Shown: in pieces, positions 3,296 through 64,000 of the stretch
How the letters are laid out: the number at the start of each line of letters is the position of its first letter
How positions within the stretch are numbered: the stretch's first letter is position 1
Assembly (NCBI RefSeq): GCF_964204645.1
Contig: NC_134034.1
Location: 10,490,962-10,554,961 of the forward strand
Source of the DNA: Tubulanus polymorphus
Lineage: Eukaryota > Animalia > Nemertea
Reading direction: 5' to 3'
DNA: 64,000 nucleotides
Made by a program: the position numbers and the translations under genes
Notes under the pieces: model-generated
Told to the model about the DNA's origin: nothing
Database searches by the model: none
The model's input: only the letters and a program-made list of their open reading frames with translations

Positions 3296-6200
3296 ATGGC
3301 GACGTCCACAGATGAAAATAAGGACCGCATGGATGAAAATAAATCGAATAAAGTGATCGTTTCTCTGAAGGGAGGCTCGAGTTTCGTGTCTTACAGACCG
3401 ATATTTTCACACGATTCGAAGTTAGTAGAATACGACTAGATTTTGTTCTTTGAAGTTAGACCAACTCCCTCGATGAACAACAACTCAACAAACTGAACTT
3501 GAACTTTTTTGGGCCTGCTTTTGCCTGGGTAGTTCTGGTTAGACTGGATCTGGCATCTGACAAACACGCATACTAAAAGAAAGGAAATAATTTTTTTTAT
3601 CTAGGTCCTTTTGGCTATGGAAAACGTATAGAAAATTAGAAAACGGTCTCGATCAAAAGAAAATGTTCCTTCTACTATTTTGAAATTAAGGCTATACGTC
3701 TAAACGTATTTTTATACAAATTTAAACAAACTTTGTAGGTGGTATTGGCACATCTTAACACATTGCCTGTTCTAGATTTGCATATTTAATGGAGGGGTGT
3801 ATGGAATTATTCGTACGGGACGGGATAGGGTTAGGGTAAGGTGAGGCTATATCTAGTTAAAACATTCGGCCGACTGTCAGCGAGCTCGGTGGTCTAGTGG
3901 TATGATGCTGCGCTAGTAATTTACTGGCCCGGGTTCGAGTCATGCTCGATCCGCTCTATTTTTCTCTAACTCTATTCTCCACACTTTCCTGGAATTTTCT
4001 AAGTCGCGCACCTCTGTACGCATGCGCGGCGTTAATCAGCCAATCAGCGACAGTTATTAGCGTACAGATCCTAGTTCCGTACCAATAGCCTCCAGAGTAA
4101 TCCATATGGGTCCGTTTTATGAGCGAACATTTATAATCTGGGTACGGAGTTGGGTTTAGTTATCTATAAACTGATTATCGATTGCATCTGTTTTCCAGGT
4201 ATTTGTTTTGCTGTTGCGGTAATGTGGTTCAAGTGCTAAATGTGGAAAGTGGAGAATGTGTCCACCGTTTACGAAAACACCAAAACACAGTGACTGCCGT
4301 GAAATTAAACCCCTTGAATTATCTTCAGGTAAACGTCGAACAATCAAGGTCACAGGCCTAGATGGCATGGGCTGATTGCTTCAGAAAAATGAACACTTAA
4401 ACTTAACCCTTTCAGTGCTGGCTAATTAATACCTAAAGTGCTGAAGATAAGTTGAAAATTCTGAAAAATTCCACCCTAGTGTGTTGAATAACAGGAATAG
4501 CACTATAGTGTGTCTACACCGCGGCGCGGTGTATCGTTAGTTACTAGTATTTCACTACTATGTTTGACAGGTGCTGCCATTTTTCAAGAGAGACAATTAG
4601 TAATCACTAATTAAATCAATACACTGCAGTGAGGTGTACTAGCAAAATCCATCACTCATTCGTACACCGCACTTCGGTGTAGACGCACTGAAAGGGTTAA
4701 AAGAAATGAATATATAAGTTCATTTACGAAGAGTGAAGTCACATTTTAACCTCTGTACCAGTTCCATAATTATGGCTTAGACATAAGACCAGTCTAAGAC
4801 TAAGGTCTAGTAGACTTAGTTCTATAGCCAATAAGACCAGTCTTGGGATTCGAAACCATTTTTGGTTGTTACATTACCTATATAAGTGATGAGCTTAGAC
4901 TAGTCTTAAGTTGTTAGATAAGTTGTAGAATTTAGATTGTTTAAAGCTGGTCTTACGTTATCAGATTGACTATTGAACTACAGGTCTTAAACATAAGCCA
5001 TTGCTGTGCAACTGGGGTGTGAAAAAAAGCCAATTACACTAGTAAAGATGTGAAAAATCTGGACAATTTATTTGGAAAATCCTGGTGTTTGTTAGAAAAT
5101 ATGAGAAAATCTGATTGTAAGTTGTGAAAAAATGTGAAATTGCCAGAATTCATCAATCATTGATGAACTCTGGCAACTTCATATTTTTGTTGAACCAGTC
5201 AATCAGACCATTTTAATCAAACAAAAATTTGATACTTACTGATCTTAATTTCATCGATTATATTTCAGTTATACTCATCAGGTTTAGACGGTCAGCTCGT
5301 CCTGTGGGATTACTTGGATGCCGTCGTTTTGAAGACATTCGATTTGAAGCTCCCGATTTTCAGTTTTTCTCCGCTGGGTCTGATGACGTTGGAGACCGGT
5401 CGGCAGGCCGAATTTCTCGTAGCCGTCAGAGCTGATAAAAGTGAGTATTGATTGATAATCGAATCGAATGACCAACTGCGAGGATTGACCAGCTCTGACC
5501 AATCAGATGGTAGGATCGAAGATAGAGGCAATTTGCATACCAGGTGACTAGCTCTGACCAATCAGATGGTACGATCGGAGATAGAGGCAATTTGCATACC
5601 TACCAGGTGACTAGCTCTGACCAATCAGAAGTTAGGGTTAGGATTAAGCATGTGAGCGAGTTGCGCCCCCAAGTGACCAGCTCTGACCAATCAGATGGTA
5701 GGATCAGAGATAGAGGCAATAAAGAATTTGCATACCAGGTGACCAGCTCTGACCAATCAGATGGTCGGATCAGAGATAGAGGCAATAAAGAATTTGCATA
5801 CCAGGTGACCAGCTCTGACCAATCAGATGGTAGGATCAGAGGTAGAGGCAATAAAGAATTTGCATACCAGGTGACCAGATTTGACCATGCAGAAGCTAGG
5901 CTCAGAATTAAACATATGGGCAATTTGCATACCAGGTCTGGTGACCTGCTCTGCCCAATCGGGTCCTAGTGTTAGGGTTAAGCATGTGGGCAATTTGCAT
6001 ACCAGGTGACCGGCTCCGACCAATCGGAAGCTTCCGAATCCAAAAATCATCAAACGATTCGTCAAGAGATTTTTCCTCTCAGTGTTGTGTATGTTTTACC
6101 TATGGTGGATATCTCGCTTGCCACTGTAAGCCATGCCAGGACCTCAATGAATAGATAAACCTACTCCGGTCTATAAAACTAGGCTACCCAGAACTCAGTC

Positions 6201-9200
6201 CACATTCAAATTTAAAAAAAAAAATTGAAATTGATATTTGTAGAAAAAAATGTAATTAATTTCCAGGTGCCCACATCGCGAAAGTGCAGCTGCCTTCGAA
6301 ACGCGAGGGGAAACCGAAAATCATTGAATTGATGAGAAACGTCAGTAAAAGCGATAAGATGTCAGCGGTCAGACTGAACGGAGAATTCGTAGTAAGCGTG
6401 AAACCTCGATGTCTCTCGATACAGTGGTTGAAGAAAGATAAATTCATCGAGTAAGTTGCGTGATTAGTTTTTTTTTTTGACTTGGCCCAGTTTTTGTACC
6501 GCGCGGAGTAGATACACCAGTGGGTAGCACAGTAGCGTGACTCGGTTTAGTCCATTTAGTGGTCCTTCATTTTAAGAATGTTAGATATCAGTTACAAAAC
6601 GAGAATGTCAATGATCTGGTCTTAGGTTGTTAGGTTGGTTTAGAACCAAAATGAACTTAGCCTATTGTCTCAAAGGAAAATTGTTAGATTGGTTATAGAA
6701 CCAAAAATGAACCTAGACTGGTGGTTTCGGGGAAAGTTGTTAGATTGCACTTAAAAAAAAACTTTAAAAAAAAGCACTTAAACTGGTGGTCTCAGGGAAG
6801 TTGTGAGATTGGTCTTGAAACTGGTGGTCTCAGGGAAGTTGTGAGATTGGTCTCGAAACTGGTGGTCTCAGGGAAGTTGTGAGATTGGTCTCGAAACTGG
6901 TGGTCTCAGGGAAGTTGTGAGATTGGTCTCGAAACTGGTGGTCTCAGGGAAGTTGTGAGATTGGTCTCGAAACTGGTGGTCTCAGGGAAGTTGTGAGATT
7001 GGTCTCGAAACTGGTGGTCTCAGGGAAGTTGTGAGATTGGTCTCGAAACTGGTGGTCTCAGGGAAGTTGTGAGATTGGTCTCGAAACTGGTGGTCTCAGG
7101 GAAGTTGTGAGATTGGTCTCGAAACTGGTGGTCTCAGGGAAGTTGTGAGATTGGTCTCGAAACTGGTGGTCTCAGGGAAGTTGTGAGATTGGTCTCGAAA
7201 CTGGTGGTCTCAGGGAAGTTGTGAGATTGGTCTCGAAACTGGTGGTCTCAGGGAAGTTGTGAGATTGGTCTCGAAACTGGTGGTCTCAGGGAAGTTGTGA
7301 GATTGGTCTCGAAACTGGTGGTCTCAGGGAAGTTGTGAGATTGGTCTTGAAACTGGTGGTCTCAGGGAAGTTGTGAGATTGGTTATAGAATTAAAATGAA
7401 CTTTTACCGGGTCTTGAGTTATTAAATCTTGAATCTGCTGATAAAGTCCTAAAAAGACTGACTTAGCGCATTAGCGCCACCTGATAACCCATGATTGTCA
7501 ACTTGTAGTAACTTTCGTCGACCCGTTTTTCAGGCATAAACTAGTGAAGGAACACACGAATACGAGAATGAGTTGCGTGGCGTGTCATCCGTCTGATAGC
7601 TGTATCGCCACCGGTTGCGACGACGGTATCATTCTATTGTGGTGGCATTTCTCCAGATCGGAACGCGTCGTCAAGTCGATCTATCAATGGCACGCCCTCC
7701 CGGTCGGAGATATACAGTTCACCGTAGAAGGTTTGTTTGTTTTGTTCGGTTTAGTTTACACTTAAAATCCCTTTAGGCCACACCAAAAGAAAATCCTGTT
7801 TCTCTGGCGGGGCAATCACCAAAATGGGTAGGGTAGGTAGGACATCTTTTTTTCTTTTTATAGAAAAAAAAATATCGTTTATTCTTCTATCAGTGGGTAG
7901 GTTGCCGTAAATAATTTTGACTGGACTAAATTCCTAGTCAGGAATGCGATTAACAGCTAGTAGACCACAATAATAAAAGGAAATTGAGGTGTTTGTACAA
8001 TTAACTATGAAAAAAACTATATTTTGAACATATTTCACGGAATTTGCCATTTCCAGAATCAAATTTTAAATCCGATATATTAAAATGTTTTTATAAAAAA
8101 TATTTACGAGAAAGGAGAGTTTGGTAGTCGGTCGGCCACATATATATTTTGGAAAAAAGTTATTTCACTGAAAATGTTGAAAAAGGGTCGGTAGGCGATT
8201 ATATTTTATTCTGAAAATGATTATTTGATATGGGGAAATAACGGGTCGGTTAGGCCCGAGAAACGGGGTTTTCTTTTGGTGTGGCCTTACTTACGTTCGT
8301 TCCCGAAATTCTGGATTTTATTCTTGTTTTTAGGTTCGTACATGATGAGCGGCGGTCAGGAAAGCGTTCTCGTCAAATGGCAGCACAACGCGTCGTCCAA
8401 CGATAAACACAGTCGTCAGTTTCTGCCGAGACTCGGAGCGCCGGTGTGCTACGTGACCACGTCGCCGGATAACGCGTGCTACGCCACTTGTCACTCGGAT
8501 AACGGTAAATACAGGGTTCATAATAATGATAATAATAATAATGATAATAATAATAATAATTTATTTCTCTACGTAGTAATTATTGTGCACTTAACATACG
8601 GTAAGAAAATTTTGAAAATTATGAATACAATTCTAGGTGAAATGCAACACATTGAGATTACTGAAATTGTCAATTTGTTGAAACAAATATTAAAACAAAT
8701 AGGTTCGTTAAAAAGATATGTTTTGAGGTTTGATTTGAAAGTTTCGACTTGTAGGACTAGATCTAATATGACTAGGGAGAGCGTTCTAGATTTCAGGAGC
8801 AGCAAATTTGATAGCTCTCTTAGCAAAATTTCTATTATGACTACATGATAGGTTTCACTAGAATCCTGAATGGAACGAAGTCAGGGGAATTTGTCGAGAT
8901 CACTAGATCGCGTGTAAAATGAGTTTCCGTCTATGTCTTACGTATTTGACTGTGTTAATTGATCGGATTCTAAGCAGATCAAGTCAGGGAAACAACGTGC
9001 GTGTCAGGGAATTATAGTCAAGGAAAAAGTCAGATAATAGTGGCCACCCTGTCTAAAATATGTTCATGCCTGATGCCTACGTATTCCTGAGATAGTCTTA
9101 AACTTTCATCTCAGATCAGTCTAAGCCCATTTTGGTGGTAAATTCAATCTATAATAACCAAAGACCATTTCCTTAGATTTGAGGCAGTTTTATTTGGACT

Positions 9201-11310
9201 CGGGACATTGATCGAGCCCAGACATTGAACGTAAGATGAATGTCTAATTTTGAAAAAAAAATTATTTTTGTTTTCAGAAATAAAAATCATCACAAATTTG
9301 ATGACGATCAAACAGGTCGTGCAAGGACTGACGATCGGACACGCCGGCACTATAAAGCGGAATCCCCTGCCGGCCGGACTGCATATCGACCCGCGAACGA
9401 AGGCGCTCGTTAGCAACGGAAAACTCGGGCATTTACAATTCTACAATTTACAAAACGATAAACAACTCTATAACGTAAGTTGAATTTACTGAGGAGTAAT
9501 ATCGATATTTCTAAGAGCAGATAGGGTTAAAGATTTCGACGTATTTCGATATTTTTTCTAGTTGGATATCGTCTGTCAGAACTACGTGTCGTCTACCAGT
9601 CGCGACCGAGCGATGATCGTCACAGAGTTGGAAAACGTCGCTTTCGACGCGTCCGGAAACTGGCTCGCGACCGTCGAACATTGGCACGACGCCAGCGAGG
9701 AGTTCTCGCGCGAGTTCCGACTGAAGTTCTGGCGATTCGACGCGGCGACGCAACGGTAAGAGATTTATTATCTTATGACAGTGTTCTTACAACGCCTTGA
9801 TCCTTGAAAACTCCCTCTGAACCAAAAATGTTTTTCAAGGTCCTTGAATTCGAGTAAAATGGCCAATAGTCGAAGAAATCTCCTTGAATTTTGAGAAATT
9901 GGCTATGAGAAAAATGTTTAGGTTTTAGGCCTAGTTATTACACAGGGCCCAATTTTACAGTTCTGAGTTAAGATTTGTCTACTCTCAGAGTTAACTCATT
10001 GAAAACGAACTAACTTTAACTCAGAGTTAACTCGAACTCACAACTGTGGAACTGGGTCCAGATGAATTCCATCGAATTAAATGGTTTACTGAGAAAAAAA
10101 GGTAGCAAATTAGGAGGATTCTATAGTAATTACTGATGCAGACACTCCTTGAATTCTGGAATGACTGATCAGTAGGGACCCCGTTATAACTGGGTCCCTA
10201 CAACTCCTTGATTGTTTAAAATCTTCTAAACTGAGAATCGCTTTTGCCCAAATTCTGATGAGTAACTGCTATATAGTGGTATTCCCGTTATTCAACACAC
10301 TAGGGGGGAATTTTTCAAAATTTTCAAATTATCTCCAGCACTATAGGGTATTGATTAGTCAGCACTGAAAGGGTTAATCATTCTGACCGCTGCTTTGATT
10401 GTCGTATTTCAGGTATGCGTTGAATACAGTTATCGACATGCCTCACGACGATCGTATAAACAGTTTGAAATTCCGTCCGACGTTGAACAAGGACGACGAC
10501 GCGGCAACGGTCGTCACGACCAGCGCGGACGGACGATTTAAACTATGGTCGCTCGTCGACGATACAGATATATATCGTAAGTAGACAACTGAAAACATCG
10601 ATCGACTGGGTTCTTACGCGTTTTGAAAATTTGAAAATTTTTTCCACGCCCTGGAAAAGGTTATGGGAATTTTCTCTATACGGCTATGGAAAAGGTATAG
10701 AAAATCAGAAAATGGTCTGAAAATTCTATCTTGAATTTTAGGCTATATGCCTAAATGTCTGACTACACATTTGATAACAAACTTTATGAAAACACTTTGT
10801 CGATGGTATTGATAATTGGCACTTATTCACTGTGAATGAGCCTTCGCCTTGACTGTTCTAGGCTGGCGATAGTAACGTAGTAGTTGTCCGGAAAATCGAA
10901 TAATAATCATAAAAGTTATGGCAAATGAAATTGAGAAACCCGTAAGAACCTTTGATAAACTAGATGTCCATGAGGGGGCATTTGGAACTTCTACCCCGCA
11001 GTCAAGAAAAGATACTATTAAGAAACCAATTATCGCTTGCAAATTTCGTCGTAAAAGCTTCCGATGAAGTGGGATTATATCGGGTATCAGCATGTTCGTT
11101 ATGGAAGCTTTTACTCTATTAGTTTAAAGGTCAGACTGAAACTTTCTGGGGCCCTCTAACGCGAATTTATTATATAAAGGGGGTGCTCTTGTAGATTGGT
11201 ATTAACTTAAACCCGGTGGTTAACTCGATTCATTTTCAATCGATTAAGCCCGTGGGCCCAGTTGCATAGATGCGACTTAAGTACAAAAGTCTTAAATCTT
11301 AAGACTAGTC

Positions 11311-11350
<40 letters not shown>

Positions 11351-14300
11351 TTTATTTCTTATATAGCGCATAACTAAGATAATAATCTATGCGCTTTACA
11401 AAGGGTTAATACATTTACATAAAATCAAGAACTCATAAAATCAAGTCTTAAGTTGTTAGGTTGACTATGGAACAAAGGTGGTTTTAGACTGGTCTTAAAT
11501 CTAAACCTTGACTGTGCAACTGACCTCTTGGTTTAAGTTAATACCATAAAACCGTGCCGAGGTATTGACGTAGTAGGATTTTATCATCGCCATTGCATTC
11601 ACGAGACCGAAATAAAAACGTTTAGATTTTTTGTTTTTTCAGGTAAGAATCAATGTTGGAATTGCGAGTCGGTCGGATTTTACCGACGAATGAAGGCCTC
11701 GGACGGCGACTTCTCCGAGGACGGTTCGATTTTAGCGGTCGCGTTCGAAAGCGTTCTGACGCTGTGGGATCCCGATACGGACGTGCTGAGAAAGACCTTC
11801 GACTGCTTAGAAAATATCAGGTAAGCGCGCGGGTCGAGTTCAAACACGGTCCCTACAGCTCCTTTGATTCCTCAAAAACTCCTGAAAAACGGTTTTGAAG
11901 GTGCTTGAAACTCCTTTAATTTGAACAAAATGCCCGAAGCTACAATTTTGAGAAATGGGCGATTAGAAATTTTTATCTCGTTTATAGATGTACAGTAGAT
12001 GAAATAAAGCTTAAATAGCTTAAATCGATACAGTTTGAGACCATGATTTTTAAAAATCTTTTTGTTGAAATAGTTGTGTGAAGTTCGGACGAAAGACATC
12101 TGCTCAGAGAATTGTCGTCGTGACAACCAATCATCTATATGTGTGGAATATTCCAACTTGTACCGGTAAGAAGAAAAAACCCGACGACCAATGAGAGTGA
12201 TTCCGACCTCTAAATTCAATAAATTTCGTCTAACATGGACAAACTAGGACTGGCAAGTGAAGGATTATAAGATATGTTAGGTCTAGGATGATAGTTTCGT
12301 TTTTGTCGAAGTTAGTTATAAATCTTAGTTGGCCAAGTCTGAGTTAGCCGAGGTTTGTTGTAGTATGAACCCTAATAGGAGGAGTGATATTCAAAGATAT
12401 TGCCTGTGTCTGGGGTACCCCTACAGTATTCTAGTTCATTGCCTGTGTCTGGGGTACCCCCAGGGTGTTCTAATAATATGTTCCCTTTTCACATTAACAG
12501 TTAGCTGGAAAGTGAGTTTGAATGTAAGGCGACTGGTCTCGGATCCTGAGAGCGAACATATGGCGGTATTTACCCAGTCACTCGATGGTAAGTTGATAGT
12601 AATCTCGATTTTTCATTGCCCGTACAGTGCCCACAGTGCGGTGTATAATCCACCTACCCTAAATTATTTGTACCGCTTCTTTAAAAGAGTCAAAGAGTCG
12701 AGTGAATTTTGTTGAATAAGCTAAAAGTCATGGAAATACGTTGATATCGCTAGATCACGCGTAAAATCGAACAGTTCCGTGTATATTTAATGTATTTGAC
12801 TGTGATTATTGATTGGATTCTAAGCAGATCAAGTCAGGAGAATCAACTTGCGTGTCAGGAAACAAGCGAGTTAAATAAAAGAGGCCTGAATGTCACGAGT
12901 GAATCTTACACGGTCTTTTCGTAATTGACTTTTTTTGCAGTGCACGTGTTTACGCCTTCGAACCCGAAGCCGGTTTACTCGCATTTGAAAGCGACGACCG
13001 AAGACGTCATCGGCGCGATATTCGTACCGCAGTCCGCCGAATCCAACGCCGCCGCGTTCGACAAAGACAGTCCGCTGTCGTGGCAACGGCATTCTCGATT
13101 GTACTTCATGACTAAATCACAGGTATGAACGCGGATGTTGTCCGTCTGCCCCCCCCCCCTGTTGCGAGATTTTCGAATGTTAAACCTAAGTGAAATTCGA
13201 AATTACCCGAAAACTTGAACGAGGCCATGATTTCGAGGGGTCTTACGTATCAAGGGAAATCCGGGTTTATTTTTCCCTGCAGTGAAATCAGGGAGTTCTG
13301 AATCTTTTCTTGACGATCAGAGAAAATTTGGGGATTTGAATTTTCGGTGTCTTGTTGCTCTTGCCGGTGAAGAGTGGCACGAGGAACCTCTTGATAACAA
13401 GCAGCCTTCACTGAGGATGTCTTATAATTCAATCAGGGAATTTTTGGTGTCTTGTTCTTGCTGGTGACGAGCGGCTCAATGAACCTCCTGATAAGAAACA
13501 GCCCTCACTGAGAATACCTTATAATTTAATCAGGGAATTTGAATTTTTTTATTTGAATTTTTAGTGTCTTGTTTTTGCTGTTGCCGAGTGACACAGGGAA
13601 CCTCTTCATAAGCCCCCACTGAGGATAACTCGTAATTTAATTAGGGAATTTTTTTTCAAAGGTACAGGGAAATATCCAGGAACTTTTGGATTCCCTGATC
13701 TGTGAGAACCGTGTGATTCTTTGAAATATCCATCGTTTAATAAATAACCCCACGTGTGCTAGATACGAAGGAGGAAAATTGTGAAATTTCAATTTCATTT
13801 TCAGCATCTTCTGACGTTGAATTCTGCGACGACGGAGAGTCGGACGGAGTCAGCGGACGCCGACTCTGACAACGCGACGACGGTCTCTAATTTCGTAAAC
13901 GCGAAAGCGACGAATGTTCCTACGACTCCGTTTAATCAGTTGCTGGCTCGGACGAAAAAAACGGGCGTCGTCGCGGCGAAACCCGAGCTACTCGTCGGGA
14001 AAATCGGCGGCAAAAGGAACGAAATTCTAGACGATGTACGTTGTTTTTTGATACCGCGTTTAATTCGAAAAAATGAGTTATCTAAATAATCATTCAAACA
14101 GGCGATCTTTTCTGTATCGATTTGATGATGTCATAGTGGGATTTATAGAGGCAGACATATTATCTCTCTAAGTGTCAATTTGATACAAAATTGTAATTTT
14201 GAATGTAATATTCTTTTCTATAGATGTTGATGACGCCGGCGCATGTGCTGCCCTCCGTGACCGTTTTATGTAACACGTTCCTTCACTCAACGATGCTCAA

Positions 14301-15135
14301 CAAGTCGTTCGAGTCGTCATCAAAAAATAGGTCAGTATTTTCTGGAAATAGGTCAGCAGTTAGGGGCTAGTTCATAGGGTTCATAGCATTAATAGTCTTT
14401 GATTTTCCATACCTTTTCGAGGGCCAAAATTTCTATAACTACTAAATAATGAGGAATTCACTAAGGCAGAATCGAAAGTCTTTGCAAATAAATGCTACAA
14501 TGCGACCACTAACCAGGAAATCAGGGAATTTCCTTTTCTTTAAAGAAGTCCGGGAATTTAGTATTTAAGCTCGAAATCAGGGGAAAGTTAGGAAAATTTG
14601 TTGAGATCGCTAGATCAAACTGTTTTCATCTATGTCTTACATATTTGACTGTGTTAATTAGTTGAGTCAGGGAAAATAACATTTATGTCGGGGAATGATC
14701 AGCTAGGGGGAAAAGCAAGTCAAATAAAAGTGGCCAGCCTTTCCTAGACCTGCAGTTAAACGGGAACACGTCTAAAATTGAGGGGGACACGAATTAGACT
14801 AATTTTGTAAATGTACTAAATGAAAGGCCACATGGCTTGAGCTTAAGTAAAGAATGATTTAGATTTCCGATTTTTCAATTATTTTAAGAACTGAAAAGGA
14901 TGATGAAGATGATGAAAATGGGAATTCAGATTCAGATATGGAAGTCGATGACGACGACGAGCCGAGCCGCGAATCTCGGCAGCGGCAGACGGAAACTAAA
15001 AATTCTCAGCAGACGGAAACCGATTGTTCACAGCAGACGGACTCCGCTGCAGACGTCGACAATAAACTGACGAGGAAATTACCGAGACCTAAAACATTTC
15101 AATGGCTGCGAAAAACTTTATCGACAAAAACTTGA
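3296..15135 (+). CDS. WDR75: WD repeat-containing protein 75 (UTP17/Nan1, SSU processome t-UTP subunit), 16 exons, ~885 aa
   Basis: join(3296-3420,4199-4328,5269-5440,6267-6450,7534-7730,8334-8504,9278-9474,9562-9755,10413-10576,11643-11820,12074-12165,12501-12587,12941-13122,13805-14035,14224-14330,14889-15135) = 2658 nt. All introns are GT-AG with consistent phases. Peptides match recalled WDR75: FSHDSKYLFC, CVACHPSDSCIATG, SGGQESVLVKW, FLPRLGA, IDPRTKALVSNGKLGHLQFY, GNWLATVE, FSEDGSILAVAFE, PTTPF, TPAHVLPS, and an acidic C-terminus. Confidence 0.95.
3881..3950 (+). mobile_element. tRNA-derived repeat / pseudo-tRNA (SINE-like head) in WDR75 intron 1
   Basis: A box TGGTCTAGTGG (3890-3900) and B box GGTTCGAGTC (3932-3941). 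The cloverleaf stems are degenerate. Confidence 0.55.
4403..4700. mobile_element. piggyBac-like MITE (~290 bp)
   Basis: TTAA|CCCTTTCAGTGC ... GCACTGAAAGGG|TTAA terminal inverted repeats with TTAA target duplication. Related copies at 35483-35785, 38576-38867 and 58821-59166; partial copies at ~10268-10377 and ~45555-45680. Confidence 0.85.
5485..6025. repeat. ~60-66-bp minisatellite (about 8 degenerate units) in WDR75 intron 3
   Basis: Unit GTGACCAGCTCTGACCAATCAGATGGTAGGATCAGAGATAGAGGCAATAAAGAATTTGCATACCAG. Explains the repetitive ORFs 5544-5969 and 5600-5923. Confidence 0.9.
6780..7385. repeat. 38-bp minisatellite, ~16 near-identical copies
   Basis: Unit AAACTGGTGGTCTCAGGGAAGTTGTGAGATTGGTCTCG. 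Confidence 0.95.
7776..8286. mobile_element. PIF/Harbinger-like (Tourist-type) MITE
   Basis: TTA|GGCCACACCAAAAGAAAA ... TTTTCTTTTGGTGTGGCC|TTA: 18-bp perfect inverted termini, extending imperfectly, with a 3-bp TTA duplication. Confidence 0.7.
8521..8845 (-). mobile_element. L2/CR1-group LINE 3' fragment
   Basis: Minus strand reads RAIKFAAPEI*NALPSHIRSS and, frameshifted, FKSNLKTYLF, typical of the ORF2 end. Terminates in a (TTA)n tail at 8521-8560. Confidence 0.65.
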
Positions 15136-15148
15136 TATTTATTTTTAA

Positions 15149-15154
15149 AATAAA
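15149..15154 (+). terminator. Candidate WDR75 polyadenylation signal
   Basis: AATAAA beginning 14 nt after the stop codon, with T/GT-rich sequence downstream (~15190-15220). A second AATAAA lies at 15342-15347. Confidence 0.5.
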
Positions 15155-15347
15155 ATTAGAGAAAAATGTACGGCATTTATATCGAATGAATTTTTGCGTT
15201 TTGCAAAATGTTTCTTCTTTTGAATTCGCGGCAAAAAATAATTTGGAGCTGTGGTTGCTACTATAGCACTGAGGTATCCGGTGCCCGCGTGGGATCCGGC
15301 GGCAGGCGATAGACCTTGGTAAGCGAGGATGACCGCTAATCAATAAA

Positions 15348-15371
15348 CCAGGAGGTGGCGCCCTCTAGTTG
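15348..15371. promoter_or_regulatory. Pair of overlapping, oppositely oriented CTCF-like motifs between WDR75 and the ASDURF-like gene
   Basis: CCAGGAGGTGGCGC (+) and CAACTAGAGGGCGC (-) share a GGCGCC palindrome. Each has one mismatch to CCASYAGRKGGCRS. Confidence 0.4.
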
Positions 15372-15472
15372 AAGGATTAATTACAGCCGGTGTTAAACAA
15401 CTTTTCTTTATTCGCGGCTAGGACGATTTTTACGGCGATTTGTTGATTAAACTCACGTTAAAACAGCGAACG

Positions 15473-16813
15473 ATGGACGACACGTCAAATCAGGTGAATT
15501 TCTCGTTTGATAGATGAGTTAACTTTATATCTAATTCATTATTTCATCCACAATATGTATACATCAATCAACAGAGAAGTAAAGATAAAACTGTAGTAGG
15601 CTTAGCTAGCAGTAGTTAGTTACCTAATCGTTGGTGGTAAGCTGTTTATAATCGGATGGGCTTATACCAATATGTGGTTTGTGAAATTATCCGATCGTGA
15701 AACTTAAGCACAGACCGGTTACTGACTAAGCTAGCAGAAGAAGTCGAAGAGACTCAGTCAGCAGATCAGTGTCAAATCATTGACATGAACAGATGAAAAA
15801 TGATAGCTTTTTGGGTCAAAGGTTTTTGATTCTCTGCACCTTCCTGATTGATAAGTTTTAAAATAGGGAGCACCTGCTGTTTATAGGTGTCCCTGATATG
15901 GTCCTTACCTAACCATAAATAACAATTCTTCCTGACTTATTAGTGCAATAGTGAAAGTGAGTGCCTGTGTGGTACTGTAGCTAAGAACTGTAGTAGTTAG
16001 ATCGAAAAATGCAATTTGTGGGGGAGGGGGGGCTATGAAAATGCTGTTATAGCTCGGGCTTGTGCGACTTTTTCTCGGGATTGACTATAATTTTGAAATA
16101 TTTTTGCTTTAATTTTTACAGGTTTATTTGCTAAAAACGTTGGAAATGGAATTGAAAAGTCTACGACCAAATGCAGTGAGTTTGGACCATTAAGGCCTGA
16201 ATACCAGCATCCACCCCACTACATCCACCCGCTAATTTTCTGCAAGGTTTTAGTTTTTGAAGAAATTTGCAAATCTACAAGAAGTGCTTCGATCAGGAGA
16301 TAGGCCTCTGGCCTAACAGTTCCTGAACTTGATATGATATGATATATAGGCTACAGTAATTCCCCTAATCATATCCATAAAACAACCCTAATCCTCTGGA
16401 CCCTCTCCCCCTCCTAACCTCTGATTACAACTCTTAATTACAATAATTTATCAGGCTTGATATCTTTATTTGAAAAATAACAACCGGACTGGTGGTTACA
16501 TTCACTTCGTTTTTTTTTTTCAACTTTCTATATGTTCCCTTCAAAGTTTTATTCTCTAAAATTGTGTTTCAGAAAGTCTACAAGCAACAGCAAAATAGTG
16601 ACGTATTTTTCTTAGAAAAAAAATCGCAACTTCTAGCGGAAACTCGAGGTAAAATCCTTACGAAATTTTACAGAATTCGTATTATGGTTTTTTTTTGTCG
16701 ACGCTATTTCTAATTGGTTTTATTAATATATCTTTTCCACAGAATCTTTGAAATCTCTGCAGAAGGGAAACAATTCAAATTCTGCTGCATTGAAAATGAG
16801 CGTTCTCGGTTGA
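15473..16813 (+). CDS. ASDURF: ASDURF-like prefoldin-type microprotein (ASNSD1 upstream reading frame homolog), 4 exons, 73 aa
   Basis: join(15473-15493,16122-16175,16573-16648,16743-16813) = 222 nt; GT-AG introns with phases 0,0,1. Protein MDDTSNQ-VYLLKTLEMELKSLRPNA-KVYKQQQNSDVFFLEKKSQLLAETR-ESLKSLQKGNNSNSAALKMSVLG*. KVYKQQQNSDVFFL matches recalled human ASDURF KVYRQQQNSNIFFL at 11/14. Exon 1 is the least certain part. Confidence 0.85.
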
Positions 16814-17188
16814 TACCTCACACACACACACCAGAGCTGGGAACAATTTGGACTCTTCCAATTTAGCGTCATGTTTGCGAGGAACAAAAATATGACTATT
16901 GTGAAGAAACTGATTTCATTTCCAATGAGGCGGAATTAATCGGAATTCGTGATGACTTAACGTTTTAATAATTCAATCATTTTAAAGATTAAACAGTTTA
17001 AATTCATGTGCTAAAAAAATGATTGAGAATTGTAATTACTGGTTACTATTGTAGTGTGAAATTGAATTCGAAATTGTTTTGTAGATTTTATTTTTGTTGA
17101 AATAATCAAGTTTTTCTTGTGATATTGATTCTTGTTTTTTGTTGTGGCAATATTTAATGCCATATGCTTGCATGGAGCCATTTTGAAA

Positions 17189-17194
17189 AATAAA
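17189..17194 (+). terminator. Candidate polyadenylation signal of the ASDURF-like gene
   Basis: AATAAA in an AT-rich stretch ~375 nt after the stop. An ATTAAA also lies near 16988. Confidence 0.35.
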
Positions 17195-18006
17195 TCATCT
17201 CAGATACAAGTCAAAAGTTCTATTCCGCATTTGAGTGCAGTAGTAAGTACATGTATATTTATTGTTGCTTTTTGGACATCAAAGTGCCCTGTGAAAGTTC
17301 TTCAAATTTGGCCTGGGTCAGCAACTGTGGTTAATCTCTGAAAAGTACTGTTAATAATGTGACCAATGAAAAACTTGGCGTCCATAATGGATTTGGCATT
17401 AAGTTTGATTTGAGGCAATTTGTTGTCTGAAAAATGAAGGTGTGATCAATTGTCAATTGAATGAGCAGAATATGAAAATCGGATGGTTTAATTCAGACTG
17501 CACAGTTTCATTTCACCGAGAACATTAGTGATGTACCACGGATCGTAGAGCGACGAGATCGCTGTGCCTGGAGACAACCACACTGCCACCAGGATGCGGT
17601 GAAAGTTTTACTACTGGTCGTAAATTCGATACCAATTAATTGAGGTACGTGGACGCAAAATATATCCCAAAAAAATCGATGCCAGCAAAAATATACTTTT
17701 TAGACAAGAAGGATATTGGATCCTTGGGGTAACAAGTTTTATTTATACTCCAAGGAGTTGGTCTTTACCCCCAAAAGCCTCAGCTACGATCCCGTGTGTA
17801 AAACTCTCATTCACCTGCACTGTATTGAGCCATATGGTTGGTGTAGCCGGCCCTATACACACACAGCGCAGGCAGTGCTTCCCTTCCTCCGACCGTGTAT
17901 TGAACTCGTCTCCGCTGAATGTGCGCGTTATATTATAATAGCGTAGAGCTCCCCGAGTTCGCGTAGAGCTAGCTTAGAGCTTACACTATCGTCATTTAGC
18001 GAAACC

Positions 18007-18054
18007 ATGGAGGTTTATTACCACTATACCGTTCTTCTTCACCACGATGTATAG
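18007..18054 (+). promoter_or_regulatory. Strong-Kozak uORF (15 aa) upstream of the Bcl-2-like CDS
   Basis: ACCATGG context; encodes MEVYYHYTVLLHHDV*. Overlaps ATG 18047 out of frame and ends 40 nt before ATG 18095. Confidence 0.5.
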
Positions 18055-18511
18055 CGTTAACGATATTCATACCAATAATAATAACTATATCGAAATGGCG
18101 AATTTGAGTTCGAAACAGATCGTCGCGGATTATGTGAATTACCGTTTAAAAAAGGAGGGCTTCGACTGGGCGAACTGCCCGCCCCTCCCCCCTGCTACCA
18201 GGGTCAATATTACCATGCGTCAGATAGGTGACGAATTCGAGCAAAGGTACCGGGAGGTTTTTCACCAGATGTGCGGCCAGTTGCACATCACTCCGGAGAC
18301 CGCTTATCCGACTTTCAACGCCATAGCGCACGAGTTGTTTAACGACGATACGCGCTGGGGTCGAATCGTGGCCCTTGTAACGTTCGGGGGCGCGGTCGCC
18401 ACCCAGTCGGTCGAGCGCGAGATGCCCGACCTGGTGGATAAAATCATTGACTGGATCGCTACGTATATCGACGTGCATTTACATTCGTGGATTATCGAAC
18501 ACGGAGGCTGG
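18047..18511 (+). CDS. Bcl-2 family anti-apoptotic protein (Bcl-2/Bcl-xL/Bcl-w-like), coding exon 1 (BH4, BH3, BH1, start of BH2)
   Basis: BH4 SKQIVADYVNYRLKKEGFDW, BH3 MRQIGDEFEQRY, QLHITPETAY, BH1 ELFNDDTRWGRIVALVTFGG, BH2 WIIEHGGW, then donor TGG|GTAAGT at 18511/18512. The start is ATG 18047 (197 aa) or ATG 18095 (GAAATGG, 181 aa). Confidence 0.95.
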
Positions 18512-62385: not shown

Positions 62386-64000
62386 GTAGTCATGTTTCAT
62401 GTTTACCACTACACTGATATATTTGATGATGGCTGTTGGCCCGCGCTCTTGTTTTGATGGCTGATTTTTTCAAATGATGGTTCTAGGGATTGTTGTGAGA
62501 ATTTTACTGCCATTTTGATAAGGAAAATCTTGCACGTAATAAAACATAATATAAAGGGAATGTATAGGAATTCCGTATGCACTGAATTTTGACTAGAAAA
62601 AGGGAATTTTTTTTTTTTACCAGCCTGGTAAAGTTATGGAAATTTTTTTTTCTTTTTTTTTCTCTACGGCTATGGAAAAGGTATGGAGAAACAGAAAATG
62701 GTCTCAAAATAAATTCTATTTTGAATTTTAGGTTATATGCCTGAATGACTGACTACACATTTGATAACAAACTTTTTTTTTTTCTTTTTTTTTCTCTACG
62801 GCTATGGAAAAGGTATGGAGAAACAGAAAATGGTCTCAAAATAAATTCTATTTTGAATTTTAGGTTATATGCCTGAATGACTGACTACACATTTGATAAC
62901 AAACTTTATGAAAACGCTTTAACACTTTATTGATAATTGGCACTTATTTACTTTGATTGGGCCTACATTGCCTGTTCTAAGTTGGCGCTGTATAACTCAA
63001 GGGTATGGAATAGTCATAATCTGGGTATGGAAAGTCAAATTGAATGTATAGGAATTCCGTTTTCACTGTGGCAATTTTATTTTGTTTATCTCCATTCATA
63101 GGCGCCAAAGTCTCCGAATAGCTCGGGTTTCGCTTGGATTTGGATCCACATGCGCCACCTCTCGCCGCTTGACTGGTATGAAGTTCAAAATTCGGACGGC
63201 GGCGTCTGCCCTTGCAGCTGCGGCCCGAATCCGGCCGGGATTCTTTCGAATCGGGGTTGAATATGATTCTTTTCGTCGGCTTCTCGCCAAATTCGGAAAT
63301 ACGACTCGTCGAAATCGCGTTTCATTTCTTTTCGTATATTTTCGTCCATACATTCTACTGAGGCAGCAGCAATTTATACGATTCTGTATCTACATATACA
63401 CGTTTAGTTTATACGTATGAAATGCCGTAATGACGATACTTGACGGCTTAAGACGTCATACATGTGTGCGTGTCGGGTCGCATTGCTCAAAAGTCGGTTA
63501 ATCTTTCGATCTTGAAGATGGTAAATGTCCCTCTCCTATTCGTTCGCTTGATTTCGATTCGATTCGGTGGTGTCCATGATAGTCAGTAACCTGTCTGTGG
63601 TTTAGTTTCACGATCGGATATTAAGCCCATCCGATAATAAAAAGCTTACCGCCAACGATTAGGTAACTAACTATGTCCATAATGAACCCGCCAGTCGGGA
63701 GTGAAACGGGGGGGGGGGGGTTTGATTTCGAAATCGGGAATCAAAATACAGGATATATATAAAGAAGTATTTCAACGTACAATTTTTATCGTCGTTTCGT
63801 CAAAGTTTGCCAACGGATAACTGTAACCAACTTTTGAGTAATTGAAGCCGGGTGTGAATGGTTAGGGCCTTTCGGATAGAATGGCGCCTCCGTAAGCCTT
63901 ATCAGGGTCCGATCTAAGGATTAAAAGCCACTCGCCCGTGGGCTAAGCGTATCTGAAATTTCATTTGCCCCCTCTCAAAAATCAACCGCGGCCTTCACAA

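Follow-up and report, generated by a model that had tools for sequence, protein, structure and literature searches.

In vertebrates ASDURF shares an mRNA with ASNSD1, and the pair has been counted among 14 human bicistronic transcripts (PMC13303939, EMBO Rep 2026). An ASDURF-like reading frame in a 64,000-nt stretch of the genome of the nemertean Tubulanus polymorphus (hereafter the window) raises the question of whether it stands alone here or belongs to the transcript of another gene, and what its state says about how the vertebrate arrangement arose. With a probability of roughly 0.86, we read the gene at 15473–16813 as a conventional, monocistronic, four-exon nemertean orthologue of ASDURF; the gene itself is real, ordinary, typical of invertebrates, and already known and annotated. 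Its parts and neighbours are given below, where X4 denotes the one of four public runs that behaves as RNA, none of the four being recorded as such.

3296–15135, plus strand: WDR75 (874 aa), a neighbouring called gene with WDR75 Pfam families and spliced joints in X4
15136–15472, plus strand: gap of 337 nt from the WDR75 stop to the ASDURF ATG, with the WDR75 AATAAA (15149) and the putative ASDURF promoter and 5' UTR
15473–15493, plus strand: ASDURF coding exon 1, 21 nt, 7 codons, ATG context ACGATGG, corresponding to residues 1–7 of XP_074659628.1
16122–16175, plus strand: ASDURF exon 2, 54 nt, N-terminal helix, of a size common to five other animal lineages and the human coordinates
16573–16648, plus strand: ASDURF exon 3, 76 nt, β-hairpin and start of the C-terminal helix, PF21975 E 1.8e-5
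16743–16813, plus strand: ASDURF exon 4, coding part to TGA, 71 nt, X4 contigs at depth 266–322
16814–17194, plus strand: ASDURF 3' untranslated region, with candidate poly(A) signals ATTAAA (16988) and AATAAA (17189) and the probable mRNA end
18047–18511, plus strand: first coding exon of a neighbouring Bcl-2-family gene (197 aa), PF00452 E 5.4e-34, a separate called gene

The four ASDURF exons sum to 222 nt, or 73 codons and a stop. The introns between them measure 628, 397 and 94 nt, interrupt the frame in phases 0, 0 and 1, and all run from GT to AG with acceptors rich in pyrimidines. Translation is open in each exon, and the segment KVYKQQQNSDVFFL, quoted in the first-pass annotation of this DNA, lies in exon 3; the coordinates, canonical splice sites and 73-aa reading frame of that annotation are likewise borne out. 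The RefSeq protein XP_074659628.1 (73 aa) contains every exon translation exactly and in order, and its gene occupies 1341 bases of OZ123235.1 that correspond to window 15473–16813. With all 73 residues and the genomic span identical, the record and the window gene do not differ and are the same gene. Because this identical record covers the same span, the gene is annotated, and the earlier description of it as hidden does not hold. In the searches described here, exon-level queries were single genomic exons, while full-length work used the public record.

Several features of the surroundings deserve mention in their own right. ASDURF intron 1 contains a high-copy interspersed repeat (15605–15740), recognisable by very high summed contig depth and many loose ends, and another copy lies at 63580–63673. 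The gap between WDR75 and ASDURF holds, on the minus strand at 15353–15368, a motif resembling what we take to be the CTCF consensus; a sigma-70 promoter scan, irrelevant to an animal, gave no match. Tandem repeats, judged by eye to have units of roughly 60 and 39 nt, occupy WDR75 introns at 5470–6030 and 6780–7380. The low-complexity tail encoded by the last WDR75 exon (14887–15135) is acidic, and runs X1 and X4 show deletion alleles of 6 and 3 nt there that keep the frame. Downstream, the first RefSeq ATG of the Bcl-2-like gene (18047) is overlapped out of frame by a 15-codon upstream ORF in a strong start context (18007–18054, plus strand). Translation of the gene may in fact start at a second in-frame ATG in good context, at 18095, immediately ahead of the BH4 region. 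An inhibitory upstream ORF is likewise a feature of human BCL2. The gene call places the remainder of the 197-aa Bcl-2-like gene past 26813.

Sequence searches place the protein in a defined family. In Pfam, XP_074659628.1 matches PF21975 (ASNSD1-SEP) at 38.1 bits against a cut-off of 27 (E 1.7e-9), with no match to Prefoldin_2 (PF01920) or any other family in that search. Exon 3 alone has PF21975 as its sole family match, and exon 2, itself conserved in size and phase, lifts the score from 25 to 38 bits. Protein searches by word matching, whether the query was the genomic frame of exon 3 or XP_074659628.1, recovered XP_074659628.1 alone; phmmer and an alignment profile were needed to go further. 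phmmer found 28 relatives at 36–53% identity, including proteins named ASDURF-like by RefSeq in sea urchin, amphioxus and Physella, and unnamed proteins of scallop, whelk, millipede and the fungus Linderina. All 29 members of the alignment match PF21975, and 16 of the 29 also match Prefoldin_2. The Tubulanus protein has the conserved core EL..L and VY.QQ.NS..FF around the hairpin and retains all invariant and near-invariant family residues (E17, L18, Y28, Q31, N33, S34 and F38); its 15 C-terminal residues are unlike those of other members. Against PDB sequences, the single protein had no significant match, and the alignment profile matched archaeal prefoldin weakly (E 0.05).

The exon pattern carries the orthology further. 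Exon sizes were read by aligning public protein records to their own loci, with the following coding lengths in nt.

Tubulanus: 21/54/76/71, phases 0, 0, 1
Strongylocentrotus: 63/54/76/56, phases 0, 0, 1
Three Branchiostoma genomes: 39/54/76/59, phases 0, 0, 1
Chamberlinius: 57/54/76/62, phases 0, 0, 1
Mizuhopecten: 39/54/76/83, phases 0, 0, 1
Physella: 39/54/76/65, phases 0, 0, 1

Published coordinates give human ASDURF exons of 105/54/76/71, with the ASNSD1 start 21 nt past the stop (PMC13303939 supplement). Inner exons of 54 and 76 nt with phases 0, 0 and 1 in six lineages and in human imply one-to-one ASDURF orthology, and since all three introns are common to nemertean, arthropod and human, ASDURF must already have been a complete spliced gene in the bilaterian ancestor. 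The same recurrence of sizes and phases in five other lineages, together with the PF21975 match of exon 3, argues that the Tubulanus gene is not a chance assembly. Intronless copies occur in the annelid Paralvinella palmiformis, in one ENA assembly and in the fungus Linderina (L016:10001–10255; L015:10001–10357; L018:319–540), and may reflect intron loss or retrocopying.

Transcript evidence bears on part of the model directly. GT..AG joints occur in X4 alone among the four runs, at two WDR75 introns and at ASDURF intron 3, where the joint 16648/16743 is spliced in a contig of depth 266. Of the three junctions for which RNA reads had been proposed as a check, this one is therefore seen; 15493/16122 and 16175/16573 are not among the X4 joints listed, where exon 2 has no spliced contig, and they rest on RefSeq, on conservation and on the gain in Pfam score. 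A synonymous T>C at 16608 in exon 3 is the sole X4 difference listed within the ASDURF coding exons. Cover in X4 stops before 17049, which weakly favours the poly(A) signal at 16988. We propose that ASDURF would be transcribed from its own promoter within the 337 nt past WDR75, and that its transcript, from which intron 3 is seen to be removed, would be polyadenylated at a signal within the ASDURF 3' UTR.

The predicted structure agrees with the family assignment. AlphaFold2 with an alignment predicted a helix (residues 2–20), two strands (27–30 and 37–40) and a second helix (42–72) at a mean pLDDT of 89, as anticipated by the first-pass expectation of a β-hairpin between coiled coils. All ten best Foldseek matches of this predicted model are prefoldin chains, led by 1fxk_B (TM 0.81, rmsd 1.2 Å, E 3.4e-3), and VIA-align gave Z 8.1 and an rmsd of 1.5 Å over 71 residues; such scores are modest for a helical protein this short, but agree with the sequence evidence. 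The fold is thus predicted to be a short β-type prefoldin with one hairpin between two helices, and the β-prefoldin matches, with the PF21975 score above cut-off, uphold the original naming of the gene as a prefoldin-like ASDURF. It is not a canonical PFDN1/2/4/6 or PDRG1, as PF01920 is not its best family and its arms are not full-length. A single-sequence prediction yielded a low-confidence two-helix model with no hairpin and was set aside, and structure matches from the Atlas, derived from a poor model, were ignored. Human and Arabidopsis ASDURF co-purify with URI1, UXT, PFDN2, PFDN6 and PDRG1 (PMC11009110; bioRxiv 10.1101/2023.12.13.571423). By orthology with these homologues, the Tubulanus protein may supply a hairpin for the barrel of a prefoldin-like hexamer and a coiled coil for one of the arms. 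This hexamer would comprise URI1, UXT, PFDN2, PFDN6, PDRG1 and ASDURF within the PAQosome/HSP90-R2TP co-chaperone, which would help to assemble large complexes.

Two neighbours on the same strand could in principle share a transcript with ASDURF. That ASDURF has independently become one cistron of such a transcript, shared with either the downstream Bcl-2-like gene or the upstream WDR75, seems to us improbable: X4 holds no contig, and no joint among those listed, that bridges ASDURF to either gene, and poly(A) hexamers lie on both sides, although contigs are unable to show transcript ends. Were it true, ASDURF would have joined bicistronic mRNAs on more than one occasion. Co-transcription with WDR75, with ASDURF as the downstream ORF of a read-through mRNA or as part of an operon resolved by trans-splicing, would fit the mere 337 nt between WDR75 stop and ASDURF ATG, the failure to see the ASDURF 5' end in X4, and X4 depths of similar order (161 for WDR75 against 266–322), contig depth being a poor measure of expression. 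We nevertheless think it very unlikely, given an AATAAA 13 nt past the WDR75 stop, a second at 15342 and four ATGs in the gap. The lack of X4 cover at 15079–15472 speaks weakly in the same direction, as holes prove nothing and X4 also lacks ASDURF exons 1–2 and the end of WDR75. Short upstream gaps moreover appear usual, amphioxus ASDURF lying about 310–325 nt from a divergent gene, and we found no literature report of spliced-leader trans-splicing in nemerteans. A shade less likely again is an arrangement in which ASDURF, as upstream cistron, restrains translation of the Bcl-2-like gene in an independent parallel to vertebrate ASDURF–ASNSD1. The two genes are 1233 nt apart from stop to start, and among the invertebrate loci examined it is only in Tubulanus that the next gene downstream is on the same strand; but both candidate poly(A) signals, ATTAAA at 16988 and AATAAA at 17189, lie between them, RefSeq calls two separate genes, and no Bcl-2 gene adjoins ASDURF in the other loci examined. 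The intergenic gap contains many ATGs, compared with the 12–21 nt that separate ASDURF from ASNSD1 in vertebrates. X4 has no cover at 17049–17836, a hole to be read with the same caution. The contig holding the Bcl-2 leader starts at 17957 and aligns along nearly its full length, leaving no piece from further upstream, and depths of 12–24 for the Bcl-2-like gene and 266–322 for ASDURF are more than tenfold apart, as far as contig depth can reflect expression.

The smallest chance of all we give to a degenerate or repurposed ASDURF acting outside the prefoldin-like complex, or to true first exons that differ from the model. The Tubulanus first exon is the shortest among the genomic models (21 nt against 39–63), the C-terminal tail is divergent and exons 1–2 are not seen spliced among the X4 joints listed; yet the family residues are fully kept, exon 2 has its conserved size and phase and brings the Pfam gain, and the one coding difference in X4 is silent. 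We therefore retain a monocistronic, ordinary ASDURF. Of the two options left by the first-pass annotation, a free-standing gene is supported, whereas the upstream cistron of a different partner finds no support here.

A vertebrate ASNSD1 query in tblastn had no match in the window or in any invertebrate ASDURF locus examined, and no ASNSD1 start is found in the ASDURF 3' UTR (16814–17194), so that the earlier statement that the window lacks ASNSD1 stands. Its only MCGI, at about 12139, is an off-frame chance string in a WDR75 exon upstream of ASDURF. In a control, a non-human vertebrate transcript contig, an ASNSD1-type ORF (GATase_7, Asn_synthase) starts 12 nt past the ASDURF stop. In six other lineages, namely sea urchin, amphioxus, millipede, scallop, snail and the annelid Paralvinella, the first gene called downstream of ASDURF runs antiparallel to it, and the neighbours differ; four transcript contigs of another organism have about 1 kb or more of 3' sequence and an AATAAA, with no sizeable same-strand ORF. 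As ASNSD1 is not beside ASDURF in the invertebrate loci examined, the free-standing state is the rule outside vertebrates. The uncoupled state is not peculiar to Tubulanus: it is shared by all six of these lineages and by Lytechinus, for which Dataset EV6 of PMC13303939 lists free-standing ASDURF-like mRNAs on chromosome 13 and ASNSD1 on chromosome 11.

Gene order around ASDURF offers less. No WDR75 was called or detected within 10 kb of ASDURF in sea urchin, three amphioxus genomes, millipede, scallop, snail or annelid, and an ancient WDR75–ASDURF microsynteny was rejected on this lack of adjacency. Amphioxus and scallop ASDURF face Med24 or a CATIP-like gene head-to-head across 310–620 nt (L003–L005 9675–10001; L007 9383–10001), an arrangement that suggests bidirectional promoters. 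The position of WDR75 beside ASDURF in Tubulanus recalls human 2q32, and we take the human orthologues of the various ASDURF neighbours (WDR75, CATIP, SLC11A1, RAPH1, MED24, ACLY and PAN2) to lie on 2q, 12q and 17q; such positions would be compatible with a common ancestral linkage group within which gene order has been reshuffled.

These observations suggest that a free-standing ASDURF is ancestral for bilaterians and that coupling to ASNSD1 is a vertebrate addition. Bicistronic ASDURF–ASNSD1 transcripts are known from skate to mammals (PMC13303939 Dataset EV6), and in jawed vertebrates the ASNSD1 coding sequence would have come to sit just past the stop, inside the last ASDURF exon. The shared introns give the direction of this event, because ASNSD1 begins in what was formerly ASDURF 3' UTR; ASDURF would be the old host gene and ASNSD1 the newcomer, rather than ASDURF a uORF born in an ASNSD1 leader. 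On the loci covered here, the joining is dated only to between amphioxus and the jawed-vertebrate ancestor. In human, ASNSD1 has three coding exons, the first of 1464 nt, against a gene of about 54 kb in Lytechinus and 29 kb in amphioxus (PMC13303939). This contrast is compatible with a partly processed ASNSD1 copy having inserted into the last ASDURF exon, but is no proof of it. The same study concluded that the members of most bicistronic pairs had separate origins and were brought together later, probably through retroposition and read-through, and the general model of bipartite origin and bicistronic transcription is already published there (PMC13303939); for the intron-level argument on the direction of the vertebrate fusion, we found no statement in the literature searched. 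In invertebrates, ASDURF function can be tested without disturbing ASNSD1 translation.

The Tubulanus gene can be set beside several known systems. The ASDURF-like genes of Strongylocentrotus (XP_030845940.1), Branchiostoma (XP_035688811.1), Physella (XP_059178494.1), Mizuhopecten (OWF40892.1), Chamberlinius (GAB6020361.1) and Paralvinella are free-standing, as in Tubulanus, and these six proteins are 41–51% identical to it over the core. They share its 54- and 76-nt inner exons and phases except in Paralvinella, whose copy is intronless; Tubulanus differs from them in its neighbours, shorter N-terminus and divergent tail. In plants, Arabidopsis At1g49245 is likewise a separately annotated gene, and its product co-purifies with URI, UXT, PFD2, PFD6 and PDRG1 (bioRxiv 10.1101/2023.12.13.571423). 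β-type prefoldins (archaeal β, 1fxk; PFDN1/2/4/6 and PDRG1) have the helix, single β-hairpin and helix predicted for Tubulanus ASDURF, but with longer arms, solved chains having about 100–115 residues against 73. The jawed-vertebrate ASDURF–ASNSD1 locus encodes the same protein family, and human exons 2–4 have the coding lengths of Tubulanus (54/76/71); in vertebrates, however, ASNSD1 starts 12–21 nt past the ASDURF stop in the same exon, where Tubulanus has plain 3' UTR.
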